DNA from: Mytilus edulis
Lineage: Eukaryota
Reading direction: 5' to 3'
DNA length: 64,000 bases
Assembly: GCF_963676685.1 (NCBI RefSeq)
Contig: NC_092346.1
Span: forward strand, 25,668,001-25,732,000
Both the position numbers and the translations under genes were made by a program. The notes below the pieces were generated by a model. The model worked only from the letters and a program-made list of their open reading frames with translations, was not told the DNA's origin and ran no database searches. Positions 1,828 to 59,244 of this stretch are shown here, piece by piece (the stretch's first letter is position 1; every line of letters begins with the position of its first letter).

Positions 1828-2283
1828 TTGTAGATAAACTCATCATAGATACCAGGACTAAATTTTGTATATACGCCAGACGCGCGTTTCGTCTACAAAA
1901 GACTGATCAGTGACGCTCGAATCCAAAAAAGTTAGAAAGTCCTAAAAGTTTTGCCAAATCCAGTTGAGGTACTCTATGACTGAGGTAGAAAAGTCTTAGT
2001 ATTTCAAAAATTCGAAATTTTGTAAACAGTTAATTTATAAATATAACCATATCAATGATAATTCACGTCAGCGCAAAAAGTGCTGACTACTGGGCTGGTG
2101 ATACCCTCGGGGAAATAAAATCTCCACCAGTAGTGGCATCGACCCAGTGGTTGTAAATAAACTCATCATAGATACCAGGACTAAATTTTGTATATACGCC
2201 AGACGCGCGTTTCGTCTACAAAAGACTCATCAGTTACGCTCGAATCCAAAAAAGTTAAAAAGGCCAAATAAAGTACGAAGATT
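1828..2283 (-). mobile_element. Hammerhead-ribozyme retrozyme, partial head-to-tail dimer (period 323 nt)
   Basis: Direct repeat with two type-I hammerhead motifs at 1874-1915 and 2197-2238 (minus strand: CGTCA/CGTAA-CTGAT(C/G)A-GTC-TTTTGTA-GAC-GAAAC-GCGC-GTC-TGGCG). About 43 nt are deleted relative to the 3917-4160 copy. Confidence 0.85.
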
Positions 2284-3916
2284 GAACAGCGGTATACTAC
2301 TGCTGGCTTTATTTACCTTTAAATCTAATAAAGACAAAAACAGAAAAGCCAAAACAAAATGAAATAAACAGTTCTTCGTACGTCAAAGTTCACATGTGAA
2401 GTTAAATAAATTGTTTTGATTTTTATATGAATTGGCTGCTAAGATGATGCTTTTTTTCAGTAATGACAAGACGAATGTTATATAAAAAGATTATTTTAGA
2501 CCTTCAAATGCTTAAATATTAGTTTTATAGTAAATATGTTAACAATGCAAAAACCATGAATCCCGCTTGAGAAGTTGTTTTTACGTTCTCAATGCTGATA
2601 GTGAATGAAAAGAAAATAATATAGATGTTAATACATTTAAGACTTTACAGTTTAAAAAACAAATAAAAATTGTGTTCAACAGTAAACTTTTTTTAAAGAA
2701 ATTTATTTAGCTAAAATAGGGTAAACATTGCAATAATAAGAGGGGTTTTGTAGCCTATTTTGATCAGGTGAAGTAAACAAATGCAGTCATTTCTTATATT
2801 GTTGATTATATGAATAGAAAGGATTATGGTTATACAAGAAAAAAAGAGTTCTCTTGAATGGAAACAAGTTAAAAACAGGATGGAAAATGTAAACAAATGC
2901 AGACAATAATGTTATTATGCGGTTTTACAAAAATCAGCTAAACAATTACGAGAAAAAACCCGAATTCAACGTTCGCAAATTAACATCAGATGGAATAAAT
3001 CGAAAGAAATGCCACGATGATAAATTTCGATAACAAAATAGTGTAATTAGTATATACTTTTAATCTCTCTTATTTTAGATACAGAAAATAGGGTGCAGAT
3101 TTACCTACCTTTGTAACGATACAGAAAATTATTATACAACTTTCGGACAATATGTTGGTAAAAAACGTTTGATTTTCGCTTAAGTGAGATTGGCGAGTTG
3201 TGTTTATTTCCAAGATACTGGTGACCTATAGTTGTTAATATCTGTGTCATTTTGGTCTCTTGTGGACAGTTGTCTCATTGGCAATCATACCACATCTTCT
3301 GTTTTATATTGTTTGTGTTTATCATATAATAATGTTTATGAAATATGTTATACAATGCTTTTAAATAGGGATAGGGATTATGCTTTTGGCAAATTATGCT
3401 ATTTCCGTAGTTGTTAAATCAACTGCCAAACGTCAAAATTTGTACGCATCAAAATACAGCAGAACACCAAAATCTAATTCAATTTTTCAATTAGGAAATC
3501 GTATCATTTACTTTATTTGTAAAACGTTTCAAGCACGGGGACTACAATTATTGTCTGTACATGGTTTGTGTGAAATCTAACCTTTCATATAACTGATTTA
3601 AATATTAACTGTAGATTAACACAGATGTTGCAATAGTTCATTTATTTTATAATTATTTATCGATCTTAAATACTAGAATTAGATATAAAATCTGTTGAAA
3701 ATATTGATTGCAAGCTAGTGATTGTGTAATGCAATACACATTTAAGGTTTATTTGCTAGATTGGAAGGAAGTTTATACGGTTAAAAATTATGACGGTCAA
3801 TGTTATTGTTTTCCCTAAATTACTACCTAAATAACAAACATACCACAACTTTTTCGGTGCCTATTTCCGATGCATATAATAATCGTAAATCAACATTTTG
3901 CGTTGACATACACTCT

Positions 3917-4160
3917 TTGCAAAACTGTTTACAAAATATTGACTTTTTGAAATACTAAGGCTTTTCTACCTCAGACATAGATTACCTTAGCTGAATTTGG
4001 CAAAACTTTTAGGAATTTTGGTCCTCAATGCTCTTCAACTTCGTATTTTATTTGGCCTTTTTAACTTTTTTGGATTCGAGCGTCACTGATGAGTCTTTTG
4101 TAGACGAAACGCGCGTCTGGCGTATATACAAAATTTAGTCCTGGTATCTATGATGAGTTA
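3917..4160 (+). mobile_element. Retrozyme copy (partial monomer)
   Basis: Reverse-complement match to the 1828-2283 repeat; contains the intact hammerhead at 4081-4122. Confidence 0.85.
4081..4122 (+). ncRNA. Type-I hammerhead ribozyme, intact core
   Basis: Stem I CGUCA/UGGCG; CUGAUGA; stem II GUC-UUUUGUA-GAC; GAAA; minimal stem III C-GCGC-G; GUC triplet with predicted cleavage after C4117. Confidence 0.9.
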
Positions 4161-34702: not shown

Positions 34703-34802
34703 GAAATAAAGACATTTAAACAATAATTTGGCAATCACTTGAGGTTTATTTATAAAATGAAAACAGAAATAACATACTAAATTAGAATATATTGGATCCG
34801 AG

Positions 34803-52416: not shown

Positions 52417-52966
52417 TTTAACACGTTCTGATATGTGTGTCATTTACTCTCACTGTTTGTGTCACTTTATTTTAACACGTTCTGGTGTGTGTGTCATTTA
52501 CTTTCAATGTTTGTGTCACTGTATTTTTAACACGTTCTGGTGTGTGTGTCATTTACTTTCACTGTTTGTGTTTCTGTATTTTAACACGTTCAAGTGTGTG
52601 TGTCATTTACTTTCACTGTTTGTGTAACTTCATTTGAACACGTTCTGGTGTGTATGTCATTTACTTTCACTGTGTGTGTCACTGTATTTTAACACGTTCT
52701 GGTGTGTGTGTCATTTACTTTCACTGTTTCTGTCACTGTATTTTAACACGTTCTGCTGTGTGTGTCATTTACTTTCACTGTGTGTGTCACTGTATTTTAA
52801 CACGTTCTGGTGTGTGTGTCATTTACTTTCACTGTTTGTGTCACTGTATTTTAACACGTTCTGGTGTGTGTGTGATTTACTTTCACTGTTTGTGTCACTG
52901 TATTTTAACACCTTCTGGTGTGTGTGTGATTTACTTTTACTGTTTATGTCACTTTATTTTAACACT
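52417..52966. repeat. 54-bp minisatellite, ~10 copies
   Basis: Unit ttttaacacgttctggtgtgtgtgtcatttactttcactgtttgtgtcactgta. Confidence 0.95.
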
Positions 52967-53986: not shown

Positions 53987-56900
53987 TTAAATTTCTGTGC
54001 ATGTTGACTGTTTGTCGGTAGTCGATTCTTTGATATCGTGTGTATTACTTGAAGAATCCATTCCGTCATGTTTCCTTCGTACAATAATAATAAATACTAT
54101 TCCATTAAGTACACCTCCTAAATTTGAGAACGTTGTCACGAAATGGAACAAGATTTGTGGAACATCAGTTTCCCACTGCCATATACCGTACGTTGCCATG
54201 GCCCACCACTGTACAAGAAAAGCGGTAACGAATAGAGACATGGTTTTCGCAGCTCTGTGCGATGCTTCCAAACTTTTATGCGGGTTTTTTATGGCCTTTA
54301 CTTCCTTATAGATACGAAACCAGCTAATGATGTAAAGAATTATATTGGTCATTGTTATGACAGAAAGAAAAATGGTTGTAAATATAAAGTTGGCTACATG
54401 TCCATTGACACCATCGAAGAAACAACTGAAAAGAAAAAAGTGAATATTATTTAAAAGTAGAAATAATTGAGAAAACATATATATGTTGTAGAGTTGTCAC
54501 TGACTCAGACGTACTTATGAATATAATTATTTTCTGTGACTGTATATTACATTAATTTGTAGGATCCTTTACTATAGATAATTTAGCTGATCTGTAACAA
54601 TAACATCTTCATGCCTTATATATCATGTACTGTAGTACGCCGCTAGATTAAAACTGACGTGGAAAGGTAACACATGCCCACCGAAAGCTCTTTTTTTGAG
54701 AGCCCAGGTGGTCGTGTGGTCTAGCGGGACGGCTGCAGTGCAGGCGATTTGGTGTCACGATATCACAGTAGCATGGGTTCGAATCCCGGCGAGGGAAGAA
54801 CCAAAAATTTGCGAAAGCAAATTTACAGATCTAACATTGTTGGGTTGATGTTTAGACGAGTTGTATATATACGTCAGTTTTAATCTAGCGGCGTACTACA
54901 GTACATGATATATAAGGCATGAAGATGTTATTGTTACAGATCAGCTAAATTATCTATAGTAAAGGATCCTACAAATTAATGTAAGATACAGTCACAGAAA
55001 ATAATTATATTCATAAGTACGTCTGAGTCAGTGACAACTCTACAACAGATGTATCCATCGGATCGCCATCAATGATGGTGATACATGGCTGTGTACATAA
55101 TGTATATACAACTCGTCTAAACATCAACCCAACAATGTTAGATCTGTAAATTTGCTTTCGCAAATTTTTGGTTCTTCCCTCGCCGGGATTCGAACCCATG
55201 CTACTGTGATATCGTGACACCAAATCGCCTGCACTGCAGCCGTCCCGCTAGACCACACGACCACCTGGGCTCTCAAAAAAAGAGCTTTCGGTGGGCATGT
55301 GTTACCTTTTCACGTCAGTTTTAATCTAGTGGCGTACTACAGTACATGATATATAAGGCATGAAGATGTTATTGTTACAGATCAGCTAAATTATCTATAG
55401 TAAAGGATCCTACAAATTAATGTAAGATACAGTCACAGAAAATAATTATATATAATAAAAACTATAACACAAATTCCCATACGTTTCGGCCATTACGGCC
55501 TTCTTCATTGGAATAAATTACAACATTGAAACAACAATTACATTGCTTGGATACATTACGTTATAATAACTTCTATGACGTTCATTTGTCGCGTTTTTCG
55601 ATTTTTTAATATAAATATTTTTATTATCGTTCATACATTGTGTTGAGTCCGACTCAACACAATGTATGAACGCTGTCCTTCAGGTTCTAAAGTTTTTAAT
55701 TTTTTTTATCCAAAAGGCTTCTTTGGTTTTTCTGTAAGTTTCTGTCCCAAATACTGTTTCTATGGCGGTAACTTTTAAATTTGTCATTGAATGATTGTTC
55801 TGAATAAAATGGTTGGCTACTGGATCTTCTGTTTTCTGTGTTCTTATTTTTGAAAAGTTCAATAGCATTCGTTGATATGGTGTATCACCCGTTTGTCCTA
55901 CATATATAACTTTTTCACATTTTGTACAATTAATTGCATATACCACGCCTACGGTTTTACAATTTATTTGTCCCTGAATGGTATATTCTTTGCCGGTGTT
56001 GTCACAAAATACCTTGGTTTCATTTATATGTGAGCATAATGCACAATGTTTACCACATGGTCCACATCCATTAGTTTGTTTATAAAATTGTAAATTATGC
56101 TTTTTGTGCACTAAGATGTCTTTTATGTTATTATCACGTTTAAATGCCACGATAGGCGGATCGGGGAATATTTTCTTTAGTCTTTCGGATTGAAGGAGAA
56201 TTTTAAGATTTTTTCTAAGAATTGAATGTAAGCGCTTTGGAAAAAGTAATTACTAAAAGTACCCTGTTGTTTTCTTTCTTCGGTTTGTACTGTAATAGAT
56301 CTTCTCGGTTTGAATTGTCGACTTTTTTCAATTGAACTTCAGTTGACGAGTTATTAATATTGTATACATTTTTTACGGAGTTTGGATGGCTTGACGACAC
56401 ATGTAAGTACTGGTGTTTATCTGTTGATTTCGTATAAAGATCTGTTTTAAGTTGTCCGTTTTCTATGTGTACAAACACATCAAGGAATTCAATTTTTTCA
56501 GTTGAGTAACGCATTTCTGTTTTAATTCGCGGATGCAACTGTTTCACATTTCGTGAAATTCTTTTAGTTTATCTAAACCATGTTCCCATATTCCCCAGAT
56601 GTCATCAACATATCTCCAATATGAAAATGGTTGTAAATTGCTGTTTTGAAATAAATTTTCTTCCCATTGTCCGAGGTAGGTGCAAGCATAATTCATGCCT
56701 AGATGGGAACCAATAGCTGTTCCTTCGGTTTGTAAAAAGTGTTTTCCGTTGAAGCTAAAAGTATTGTTTTCAATGACTAAATCCATCATTTTAAGAACAT
56801 TTTCAGTTGGGATTGATGTGTTAGTTCGATTTTCTAGTGCTGATTTGCATGGTTCTCGCGCTTCTTTTCTTGGTACGCTTGGATATAATTTAGTTACATC

Positions 56901-59244
56901 TAAACAAAACATTATTGCGTTGTCTGGTAAAGACTGTTCTATTGCATTTAATTTGTTTAAAAAATCTGTTGAGTCTTTGATATAGGTGGGGAAGTTTCGA
57001 ACATTCTCCAAAAGCTCGTTTTCGACTATTTCCGCGATTTTTTCTGTGGGATGGTACCGCCCATTAATAATTGTTCTTACTTGGTGATTGTTTTTGTGTA
57101 ATTTCGGATTGGCTTGTACCTTTCCGAAACATGTTCCTTTCGGTAAGAGATATTTTTTCATGTCTTTGTCTATTATTTCTCTTTTACATAAATTTTCTAT
57201 GAGTTTTTTTACTTTATTTTCATTTTTCTGTGTTAGATCCTTATCTATTGCTTTGTACGTATCGTTGTTATCTAATTCCTTTTCTACCTCTAATTTATAA
57301 TCTTCTGTATTCATTATTACAACTCCGGATGATTTGTCGCTTGGTCGTATCACGATGCTTGTATCATACAAAAGTTCCCGCATTGCTTTTTCTTCTTCAA
57401 TAGTTATATTCATTTTGAATTTTCGACTTAATCTACTTAAAATTTCATCTTTTATGGTTTGTATATACTCATCTAACCATATTTCTTTTCAAAGCCAGAA
57501 ATTAGTAGTGCTTTTGCTAATTAATATTCATAATATGTAAATGAGAATTGTACCACGTGATAATAGTTTGAACTGAACTGGCTTGGTATCATTAAAATTT
57601 TTAAATCACGGATATTATTAGTTGCCCGTCACTGAGTCCTTGTTTATAATCACTATGATATTTCCGGAAAGTTGTCAGGCGGTCAAAATCAAAACAATGA
57701 ACGCGAATTTAGTGATTTTTTCGCGTTTTCGTGAGTTGATTCTTCTTGAAATAGGTGCATTTAAACTTTACGTGGGAACCTAGAGTTCAATGACTACACA
57801 TACAAGGTTTGGACTGGCTTATTCTTTGGACATTCACGTTTCAAATTTCACCCCGGCAACCTACTTTTCTAATGACCTTGTTAGCAAATTTTCAAGTCAA
57901 AGTTTGTAAATTTGACGTGTCAGCCATTTTAGCCTGTATTTTATACTGCAATGTTAAAAGCCTCCCGCTTCGATTTTTAAAATAGCTCAGGAACCTTGAT
58001 TTTTGCAACAACAATCATCATGTTTCGTTTGAATGATGTATATTGTTGTGTATATTTATTTTCTGCCCCGGCAACCTGTTTATCACTTAATTTAAAGTAA
58101 AAAAAGACATTTTTTTTCAAAATTCCCTATCATTTCAATATAAATTCCGTGACCCGTATCCGATTTCTTTAGTATAATATTCAAATAAGCAAAGTGGCGA
58201 TGATTTCTGGATATGTCCTGGGGAGGGTGTGAACGTACTTGATTTTTTGAATTTAGTATATTCGTTTTGGTAATTTTCTTTTTCCTTGTTTTCATCGAAA
58301 AAATGTTCGCGAAGACGCATTCTTCTTCATGGCTTACAAAGATAAAGACAAACAGACAGATAATGGTACAAAAGTACGTCTTTTTGTGTTGTTACATTTG
58401 TTTGTTTCTAAAGTGATTAAGATGACAACATTAGTAAACATGGCATATATATCACGTTTTAAAAGCAAAATGTTAGCAGTTTGAATGGTCAAAAGCTTTG
58501 TTAAGATCGAATCTGTCAAATCAGACAACATATAAATTAAAGCGACAGTAGTTTAACGATTTTTGTTTTTATCTCGGTAATCGATTAAGAAAGACATATC
58601 AAAGTACAAATACAAAATAACGGAATCGCATGACCTCGAAAAGACAGGAACACAGTGCATCGACGATAAGTTATTCTTCTCTATGTTTTTACTTACAAGC
58701 TTCCATTAGGACCTAGCTGTCCTAATCCAGCTGCTACTGTTAGTCCTAATGCAGGAGCCCCAAAAATGAATACAAGAAGACGATAATCCCTGCATCCAAA
58801 GTCAAGTTTCTTCCGAAAATAGACTAAAACAAAAACATTAATTGCAACGATGCTGACTAATAAATTCTGAGCTGTGACAAATTCTGCCAGCAAAAATCCA
58901 TAGAATCCACAAAGATATTTTGGTGTTGGTAGTTCCTTTGTAAGAACTATATGCAAATGGTCAGAGAAATGTGAAATATTAAAAAGACCATCACATATTG
59001 CCATATAAACAGCAAATCGTTCGCATATTGTCCAATGAAAGAATGTTGATATGTGCTGATGATAAAATGAGTAGCTTATAACGGATATAACGCATATCAA
59101 GCTTAAGCATATACAAATTAGTGCTGGTACATGGATGCCGTAAAAGGTACCATTAGCTAGTCCATATACAGGTAAATCATAACCATCCTTTAGCTCTTTT
59201 GTTTCTGTGGTTACAGCAATGGTGGCACTAGATGAAACATTCAT
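53987..59244 (-). CDS. Seven-transmembrane receptor, paralogue B, 2 exons, 328 aa
   Basis: Exon 1 59244-58697 and exon 2 54425-53987; same intron position and phase as paralogue A; proteins highly similar. Confidence 0.8.
54485..55450. mobile_element. 441-bp Pol III (tRNA-promoter-like) structured repeat: one + partial unit (54485-54870) and 1.3 tandem - units (54871-55450)
   Basis: A box TGGTCGTGTGG at 54709-54719 and B box GTTCGAATC at 54777-54785, directly preceded by T7 (54691-54697). Period 441 (acgtcagtt at 54871 and 55312). The copies are nearly identical. Confidence 0.8.
55473..55514 (-). ncRNA. Minimal PLE-type hammerhead ribozyme relic in the element's 3' region
   Basis: Minus strand AUUCCA-aUGAAGA-A-GGCC-GUAAU-GGCC-GAAACGUA-UGGGAAU; C3 is replaced by A. 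Confidence 0.6.
55680..56150 (-). pseudogene. GIY-YIG endonuclease domain of the Penelope-like element
   Basis: GVVYAINCTKCEKVIYVGQTG...RM...VANHF...KEAFWIKK; the terminal LKTLEPEGLN lies in a shifted frame. Confidence 0.85.
56215..57413 (-). pseudogene. Reverse transcriptase domain of the Penelope-like element
   Basis: ORFs 57413-56544 and 56547-56215 with the YVDD catalytic motif, separated by a frameshift. Confidence 0.88.
57490..58215. mobile_element. ~726-bp insertion (probable non-autonomous DNA transposon) splitting the PLE ORF
   Basis: PLE peptide TFTPSPG | KEIWLDEYIQTIKDEI is interrupted here; imperfect TIRs CAAAGCCAGAA / TTCTGGATATG. Confidence 0.55.

Follow-up and report, generated by a model that had tools for sequence, protein, structure and literature searches.

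The stretch of Mytilus edulis DNA analysed here (64,000 nucleotides (nt); assembly GCF_963676685.1, contig NC_092346.1, denoted C3:25668001-25732000; hereafter the window) contains, at 54477-55460, copies of a 441-nt unit with RNA polymerase III (Pol III)-type promoter motifs, and this locus raises the question of how such a unit is copied and inserted. The original prediction, made from the sequence of the window, held that the unit is a rod-like Pol III RNA whose monomers are delimited by Pol III start and stop, and which is circularised or template-jumped by a Penelope-type reverse transcriptase (RT). Scans over the 1.37-Gb assembly revealed that the unit belongs to a young, high-copy, dispersed non-autonomous retroposon inserting into (TA)n. 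It consists of a putatively tRNA-derived head of Pol III type, a structured 3′ tail terminating in [T/C]AGAC, 6-10 nt and a TA run, and a remainder of ~230 nt. On balance, this family is probably a tandem retroposon resembling short interspersed elements (SINEs), copied into (TA)n by machinery of the Penelope-like element (PLE) type that primes at AGAC-N-TA, with most templates longer than one unit and a minority starting from the head. Positions within the unit are given as q1-q441, which correspond to the monomer at 54871-55311 of the window (minus strand).

Copy ends, insertion target and likeness to Penelope-like elements

There were 93 matches to the unit, located on many chromosomes, and the arrays at the fetched loci (numbered with the prefix L) comprised from 1.3 to more than 7 units with 83-99% identity. 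Genome-wide pattern counts allowed up to two mismatches, and a control with reversed patterns gave 0 matches. In these counts, internal unit junctions (q183-216) were found at least 4,318 times, on all chromosomes, the longest array containing at least 16 units.

The 3′ ends of the copies proved to be highly specific. A tail ending at q209 is followed by (TA)n in 3,549 cases genome-wide and an end at q298-306 in 378, while T7 (a run of seven T residues) is followed by (TA)n once and by GAGAGCCC 2,303 times. The unit contains only two AGAC motifs (q194 and q288). Each of them precedes a TA run by 6-10 nt, and it is at these two sites that 3′ ends are preferentially located. The TA run at q398-404, which is equally good but lacks an AGAC, is almost never used as an end (4 copies genome-wide).

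The 5′ ends are scattered. In an unbiased sample of TA-ended copies (n=30), they start anywhere from q3 to q401 and are 50-790 nt long; approximately 55% extend upstream of the head, across T7, and TA repeats are present at the 5′ junction in approximately 70%. Starts at q38-42 directly after (TA)n are nevertheless 4-5-fold in excess (146 copies, compared to 39 and 30 in two control start windows). These 146 head starts represent only about 4% of the TA-flanked copies. The original claim that copies both start and end mid-unit holds for their scattered 5′ ends but not for their 3′ ends, which are sharply fixed throughout the genome. Solo copies of ~172 nt running from head to tail were identified at four loci (L003, L014, L042 and L053). 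Head-to-head pairs, in which one tail ends at q209 and the other at q305/306, were found at five (L043, L047, L056, L058 and L060). Tail-to-tail pairs joined by a short (TA)n are common, and partial tandems are also present.

Since the 3′ end is fixed, the 5′ ends are scattered and the lengths are non-integral, the copies have spread by reverse transcription from a 3′ priming site; such a pattern is not expected from spread at the DNA level. The original prediction had set the unit apart both from ordinary SINEs ending in a tail and from long satellite arrays. This distinction stands only in part, as most copies have a defined tail and some arrays reach at least 16 units. Nonetheless, instead of the long homogeneous arrays at few loci that characterize a satellite, the family forms thousands of short arrays and sub-unit copies on all chromosomes. 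A recurrent snap-back 5′ junction was also observed, in which 19-20 nt of the tail are first present in inverted form and are followed, after a CATTATG loop, by the tail in direct orientation; it is identical at several loci (C1:20078756, C1:20146802, C1:99971733, C2:44728399, C2:70300368 and C3:84519537).

Known features of PLE insertions are 5′ truncation, partial tandem arrangements and neighbouring copies in inverted orientation; the endonucleases (ENs) of the Naiad/Neptune type have a bias for (TA)n, and nonautonomous PLE derivatives form multicopy head-to-tail insertions (PMC8557442). The mussel family shares the 5′ truncation, the partial tandems and the adjacent inverted 5′-truncated copies, and its microsatellite bias is evident from the (TA)n at the 3′ junction of the 3,549 and 378 copies and at most 5′ junctions. 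Its insertion anatomy and 3′-end motif point to PLEs, as the original prediction had suggested (PMC8557442).

The 3′-end motif is not confined to the family. In the fetched loci, 22 of 183 non-family 60-mers upstream of (TA)n carry [TC]AGAC within their last 16 nt, compared to 2-6 of 183 in control windows. Two of these AGAC end types were assigned to PLEs, as the 3′ termini of copies that are colinear with open reading frames (ORFs) for RT and a GIY-YIG domain: PLE-A (L032, with colinear copies at L051, L066, L041 and L069) and PLE-B (L035, with diverged colinear copies at L039 and L066, and L085). The PLE copies share the terminal signature T-rich-[T/C]AGAC-N-(TA)n. In PLE-A as well as in PLE-B, an inner AGAC-TA end is separated by 88-95 nt from an outer one; the q209 and q299 ends of the family are similarly spaced (90 nt). 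Alignment of q178-260 with the last 150 nt of PLE-A gave z = 3.8 (about p = 0.004-0.01), and with PLE-B 0.8. Since PLEs with a C-terminal GIY-YIG domain end in the same terminal signature in this genome, the most likely partner of the family is a PLE of this kind, which we infer from the sequences rather than identify.

A second ORF-less family, of ~420-570 nt and also tandem, ends with ...CAATTTAGACTCGTT at (TA)n (L017, minus strand, reverse complement 2244-3233; L008, L011, L025, L034, L041, L056 and L060). Because it carries the same terminal signature, it is likely to be another non-autonomous user of the same machinery.

The window locus, the structure of the unit and its RNA

The features of the locus and of the unit are summarized in Table 1. 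A blastn search of the window with the monomer returned two copies on opposite strands, whose tails are joined at one TATATA and whose 5′ ends face TA-rich flanks. The repeat finder detected two pairs of inverted arms (54521-54869/55103-55451, 349 nt, 99% identity; 54477-54660/54871-55054, 184 nt, 98%) and a single direct repeat (54871-55010/55312-55451) with a spacing of 441. The predicted 441-nt period, the presence of copies in both orientations and their TA-repeat borders were confirmed. Since the plus- and minus-strand copies abut tail to tail, the head-to-tail concatenation originally proposed is limited to 1.32 tandem units in the minus-strand copy. As a whole, the locus is an inverted tail-to-tail pair rather than a clean concatemer, and this pair also accounts for most of the self-complementarity of 54477-55451.

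Table 1. Position of the identified features in the window and in the 441-nt unit.
Feature	Window position	Strand	Unit position	Basis or remarks
Left (TA)4 remnant of the target microsatellite	54477-54484	.		Adjoins 5′ end of plus-strand copy; read directly
Plus-strand copy, 0.87 unit, 5′-truncated	54485-54869	+	q266-441, then q1-209	blastn and repeat finder
T7 run, loop of conserved hairpin GCTCT/AGAGC (q27-31/q39-43)	54691-54697	+	q31-37	Inside copy, no copy boundary
G of GAGAGC	54698	+	q38	
Putative tRNA-derived head	54698-54800	+		Predicted RNA 5′ end q38-42 (54698-54702)
A-box-like motif	54717-54727	+	q57-67	
B box	54776-54786	+	q116-126	
3′ tail module (hairpin, second hairpin, AGAC, TATATA)	54805-54869	+		Fold, end counts, PLE-like tail signature
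GAAA-tetraloop hairpin	54805-54824	+	q145-164	
AGAC motif of the tail	54854-54857	+	q194-197	
TA run of the tail (TATATA)	54864-54869	+	q204-209	
Second AGAC motif			q288-291	
Second TA run			q302-306	
Third TA run			q398-404	
Full 441-nt unit of minus-strand copy	54871-55311	-	q1-441	Repeat finder, blastn
Upstream partial unit of minus-strand copy	55312-55451	-	q302-441	Repeat finder; starts in TA-rich q302-306
Right TA-rich target remnant	55452-55460	.		Between minus-strand copy and 3′ end of adjacent PLE; read directly
Neighbouring PLE, RT and C-terminal GIY-YIG-type EN ORFs over three frames	55460-57488	-		ORFs, tblastn

The plus-strand copy has a canonical 3′ end (...TAGACGAGTTG-TATATA), of the type common to 3,549 copies, and its 3′ tail module corresponds to the principal site of copy ends. 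The minus-strand copy (55451-54871; q302-441 followed by q1-441, 1.32 units) contains a 48-nt segment, q210-257 (55054-55102), that the plus-strand copy lacks. Its start has parallels at q301-304 in loci L005, L037 and L044. Its 3′ end, at q441, is non-canonical and lies directly on the TATATA of the plus-strand copy (54864-54872). Outside the two copies, the unit has no blastn similarity to the rest of the window, including the hammerhead repeats described below and the adjacent PLE.

As predicted, T7 is followed without a spacer by GAGAGC. Of the two promoter boxes, the B box (GGTTCGAATCC) is perfect, and the A-box-like motif (TGGTCTAGCGG) agrees at 9 of 11 consensus positions in a comparison by eye with the textbook consensus. 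Neither ARAGORN nor Rfam detected a tRNA or other RNA family in the window region. There were also no such matches in 22 family loci, where microRNA-like matches corresponded only to palindromic tail-to-tail junctions.

The 8-bp GAAA-tetraloop hairpin and all four of the long-range helices listed earlier were recovered by blastn and folding, and the rod-like fold is more stable than expected by chance: the monomer permuted to start at q38 has a folding energy of -138.4 kcal/mol, compared to -108.7 ± 5.6 for dinucleotide shuffles (z = -5.3). When the halves were folded separately, z was -2.0 for the SINE-like part and 0.0 for the remainder; since neither half stands out alone, the signal is due to long-range pairing. 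In the predicted fold, the head (q38-115) pairs with q391-441 and q1-32, symmetrically around the T-run, and the sense strand, with 19 G.U pairs, is 23 kcal/mol more stable than the antisense strand. A diverged head-complementary segment within the ~230-nt remainder gives the unit its rod-like fold. It is plausible that the rod arose from an old head-to-head inverted duplication; when the head was aligned to the other arm in reverse-complement form, z was 2.3, and the mismatches (8 of G.U type versus 3 of A.C type) do not differ significantly.

The hairpin enclosing the T-run has a different stem in different subfamilies (GCTCT/AGAGC, GCTCTA/TAGAGC, GCTTTA/TGAAGC, GCTTCAT/ATGAAGC and GTTTCAT/ATGAAAC) and a loop of T3 to T13. 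It is clearly maintained, with compensatory changes in the stem. The expected covariation across copies was found for this hairpin, but is otherwise weak for the whole fold; at the level of copies, it is confounded by their neutral decay and by alignment shifts at the T-run.

At 58 unit junctions, the T-run is T7 in 33, T6 in 6 and T8 in 6, with GAGAG intact in all; in some older subfamilies the loop contains T3 only. Units are more similar within arrays (96.7% identity) than between them (93.1%), yet many have a closer relative in another array. The array L010 625-3247 has an ABABAB structure (0-1 differences within a class, 10-13 between classes), and L008 1501-3264 is similar. These observations agree with multi-unit templates having been copied, or with subsequent amplification of the DNA, but not with circles of Pol III-terminated monomers.

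The family was detected in runs that carry four different species labels, and also in a metatranscriptome of fish gut. Reads were mapped on a clean plus-oriented array (L004:1100-2900). In two raw-read RNA runs, depth over the units was 300-1900x, compared to 1-5x in the flanks, with a first-mate strand bias of 15-100:1. The abundant transcription expected of a dispersed, RNA-mediated non-autonomous element was thus borne out. Provided that standard deoxyuridine triphosphate (dUTP) libraries were used, the transcripts have the same sense as the A and B boxes. Summed over units, depth varies at most ~1.6-fold along the 441 nt and is continuous through T7. No indels were reported at the T-runs, and there is no pile of molecule ends in the two units with most reads. 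Ends pile at q38 in run X23 only (29/144); the remaining reported piles adjoin mismatch clusters or a masked TA repeat and were discounted. About 5% of the reads at q209 continue into (TA)n. The metatranscriptome yielded a 471-nt contig (441 + 30, as for a closed k = 31 cycle), although a circle and tandem DNA would yield identical junctions. In one run, the reads lack 36 nt at L004 1816-1853 and 2257-2294 (q317-352), indicating an expressed deletion variant of the unit.

The insertion site is a (TA)n tract ~50 nt upstream of the splice acceptor of a G protein-coupled receptor (GPCR) gene. A GPCR exon with a weak 7tm_1 match (53987-54427, minus strand) lies to the left of the insertions, with a polypyrimidine-CAG acceptor ~50 nt from the (TA)n site. 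A 54-nt minisatellite (10 copies, 92% identity; 52417-52965) is located just upstream of the exon region. Direct repeats in the window (36394-36693/54011-54310 and 39366-39665/58683-58982; 82-92% identity, 17.6-19.3 kb apart) suggest, at the sequence level, tandemly duplicated GPCR genes. On the other side, the 3′ end of the neighbouring PLE adjoins the same (TA)n, which we regard as context and not as a demonstration of partnership with the family. The homologs of this PLE are Mytilus RT proteins (93% identity), and its relative P0095 has a C-terminal GIY-YIG domain. Its 3′ untranslated region contains a hammerhead-like remnant (GGCC-GTAAT-GGCC-GAAAC) without an Rfam call.

Mechanism and rival explanations

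According to the reading that we consider probable, the RT/EN of a PLE would nick a (TA)n target, and the TA 3′-OH would prime on the TA run just past the AGAC-containing tail, at q209 (major site) or q298-306 (minor site). The opposite (TA)n end would also be able to prime, generating inverted pairs. Most templates would be RNAs of more than one unit that read through T7 (multimers or possibly circles), and a minority would be short RNAs starting at q38-42, as expected for Pol III initiation. An extended form of this proposal, in which the family would be the first SINE-type parasite of PLEs and a hammerhead-less counterpart of retrozymes, partly driven by Pol III, forming rod-like multimers or circles and primed internally by PLE RT/EN at AGAC-N-(TA), is put forward tentatively, as a possibility that we do not consider the likelier outcome.

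Several observations weigh against a PLE-driven origin. The link to PLEs consists of the short shared motif, the similar architecture and a single alignment with z = 3.8, and no 3′ identity of more than 30 nt between the family and an autonomous element was found. A search for other elements sharing the 20-nt terminus (an exclusion pattern, i.e. the same terminus with a different sequence at q128-135) gave 284 matches, nearly all of them truncated or rearranged copies of the family; one recurrent variant among them appears to be a diverged subfamily. The neighbouring PLE ends with ...GTTATAGTTTTTAT at (TA)n and has no AGAC, and a (TA)n-specific long interspersed element (LINE) is a possible alternative partner. 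The q441+(TA)n junction of the minus-strand copy, present once genome-wide and only in the window, falls outside what the model predicts; nested insertion, deletion or switching of the template could account for this end. The period-2 arrays in L010 and L008 could stem from DNA-level amplification. As for the RNA, the strand call assumes a dUTP-type library, and the signal may partly be read-through of many loci.

It is unlikely that the family is an ordinary LINE-dependent tRNA-SINE (q38-209 with a (TA)n tail), the 441-nt arrays being a secondary satellite formed by unequal crossing-over or slippage, with no role for PLEs. The ~172-nt solo copies spanning head to tail and the period-2 higher-order structure of two arrays would fit this explanation, and tandem-like and palindromic SINE structures have been reported in bivalves (PMC11481361). 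However, arrays at thousands of sites have the same 3′ end and are 5′-truncated anywhere, including in the non-SINE part. Because the dispersed arrays share their 3′ end and are truncated at any point of the unit, it is the 441-nt unit itself that is copied. Further arguments against a LINE-dependent SINE are the (TA)n on both flanks, the use in head-to-head pairs of a second AGAC-TA end within the non-SINE part, and the match of the tail signature to PLE ends, with no LINE carrying this tail seen in the exclusion-pattern search. Dispersal at the DNA level, by Helitron/Helentron carriage or by reintegration of extrachromosomal circular DNA into (TA)n through microhomology, is highly improbable. 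Helentron-carried, dispersed short satellite-like arrays are known in oysters (PMC7492417), and some copies have TA-rich junctions at both ends, but no conserved non-repeat termini surround the arrays and copy lengths are non-integer numbers of units. The strong 3′/5′ asymmetry and the AGAC-dependent choice of ends (3,549 and 378 versus 4) are not explained by TA microhomology alone, and the abundant strand-specific RNA also argues against this route.

We consider it quite unlikely that, as originally proposed, a 441-nt Pol III RNA that starts at G38, stops at the following T7 and folds into a rod in which the ends are paired is circularised or template-jumped by a Penelope RT. In its favor are the A and B boxes, the T7 directly before the head, the GAGAGC/GCTCT stem kept via compensatory changes across subfamilies, the fold itself (z = -5.3, with the more stable sense strand), the RNA ends at q38 in one run together with the excess of genomic 5′ ends at q38-42, and the closed 471-nt contig, expected for a circle or a tandem. 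The definition of monomers by Pol III start and stop was, however, not supported: T7 ends are represented by 1 copy versus 3,549 for q209, RNA depth is maintained across T7, where no indels were reported and where molecule ends do not pile in the two most-read units, ~55% of insertions span T7, and head starts make up only ~4% of the TA-flanked copies. Moreover, a shortened run would be expected from Pol III-terminated templates, while T7 is the mode, T6 and T8 are equally frequent and GAGAG is always present, so that the T-run spectrum speaks against such templates; some older arrays have only T3 in the loop. The period-2 arrays, and units closer to those of other arrays than to their neighbours, are contrary to simple monomer circles. 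The T-run length spectrum, together with the scarcity of copies that end at the T-run, led us to reject circles derived from Pol III-terminated RNA.

A degenerate or variant hammerhead retrozyme, whether a relic or still cutting multimers into units, is very unlikely. The unit contains the box CTGACGWG, followed by CGAAAG and a conserved hairpin; W stands for T in 43 units and for A in 38, i.e. approximately half of the units have CTGACGAG, with CGAAAG 20-25 nt further on and the hairpin kept by compensatory changes, and canonical hammerhead repeats and PLEs are abundant in the genome (PMC7229834). The remaining half nevertheless have CTGACGTG, every subfamily has C in place of U at position 16.1, the core is not bordered by a stem I, and the observed 5′ ends (q38-42) do not coincide with the predicted cut after q45. 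On these grounds, the reading of CUGAcGAG...CGAAA plus hairpin as a hammerhead was rejected. Rfam searches (E up to 1-5) detected no ribozyme in the window region or in the 22 family loci; as a positive control, the same mode detected type I hammerheads elsewhere in the window and beside arrays at E = 1e-5. This agrees with the original prediction, in which a canonical hammerhead played no part.

The type I hammerheads of the window are located at 4080-4123 (+), 2196-2239 (-) and 1873-1916 (-), with scores of 27.5-32.5 bits, just below the Rfam gathering score; motifs similar to the type I hammerhead are present near 34792, 51017 and 63178. The hammerheads lie inside dispersed repeats that are probably pseudo-long terminal repeats (pseudo-LTRs) of PLEs or hammerhead retrozymes, unrelated in sequence to the 441-nt unit.

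Relation to known systems

The closest parallels to a tandem retroposon copied by PLE-type machinery are the nonautonomous PLE derivatives, including MRC1 and other Chlamys elements (Craig et al. 2021, PMC8557442). Like the mussel family, they have no ORF, show 5′ truncation, partial tandems, multi-unit head-to-tail insertions and adjacent inverted copies, and have a microsatellite target bias; their resemblance to autonomous PLEs at the 3′ end also has a possible counterpart in the mussel family. The mussel family differs in its animal host, its likely partnership with C-terminal-EN PLEs, its putatively tRNA-derived Pol III-type head, its target ((TA)n instead of (CA)n or (C)n) and the shortness of its 3′ similarity to PLEs (a motif and ~80 nt, z = 3.8).

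The metazoan non-LTR retrozymes (Cervera & de la Pena 2020, PMC7229834; bioRxiv 10.64898/2026.07.22.740005) are likewise dispersed short tandem units of a few hundred nt, occurring in the same mussel genus, with a highly expressed, highly self-paired RNA and a proposed dependence on PLEs. In contrast to them, the mussel family has no hammerhead, as tested above, its unit is 441 nt long rather than 350-390 nt, and it contains a B box and an A-box-like motif; its sequence is not similar to the hammerhead repeats of the window.

With the tRNA-derived SINEs of bivalves (PMC11481361, PMC4758252), the family can be compared through its B box and A-box-like motif near the 5′ end of a head; it also shares with them a 3′ tail of simple repeats, the 5′ truncation of copies and a ~172-nt subset running from the head to the tail end. 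Unlike these SINEs, only ~4% of its TA-flanked copies start at the head, the unit reaches 230 nt upstream of the head, insertion takes place inside (TA)n, the tail signature is of PLE and not LINE type, and there is no recognisable tRNA fold.

Inverted head-to-head pairs generated by priming at both 3′ ends of the target also have a counterpart in the twin priming of L1, which produces 5′ inversions. In the mussel family, by contrast, both arms end at specific internal AGAC-TA sites, and the palindromic (TA)n target makes the two ends equivalent.

No description of a PLE-dependent SINE or of this 441-nt family was found in the papers searched. PLE-dependent tandem elements and SINEs are each already known, and it is their combination that appears to be new. 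How PLEs choose templates and targets, and how tandem and inverted insertions arise, is an acknowledged open question (PMC8557442). In the mussel family, a very short template has given rise to thousands of young insertions that follow a two-site, motif-dependent 3′ rule (3,549 and 378 copies versus 4), and this AGAC-TA rule makes the question of template choice testable by mutating a few bases. If the proposed dependence is true, LINEs and LTR elements would be joined by a third class of autonomous partners in the SINE concept, and the family would provide a natural reporter of 170-441 nt for the unsolved mechanism of PLE integration. Compared with the retrozymes, it indicates that tandem, highly expressed, rod-folding repeats of mussels need no hammerhead.

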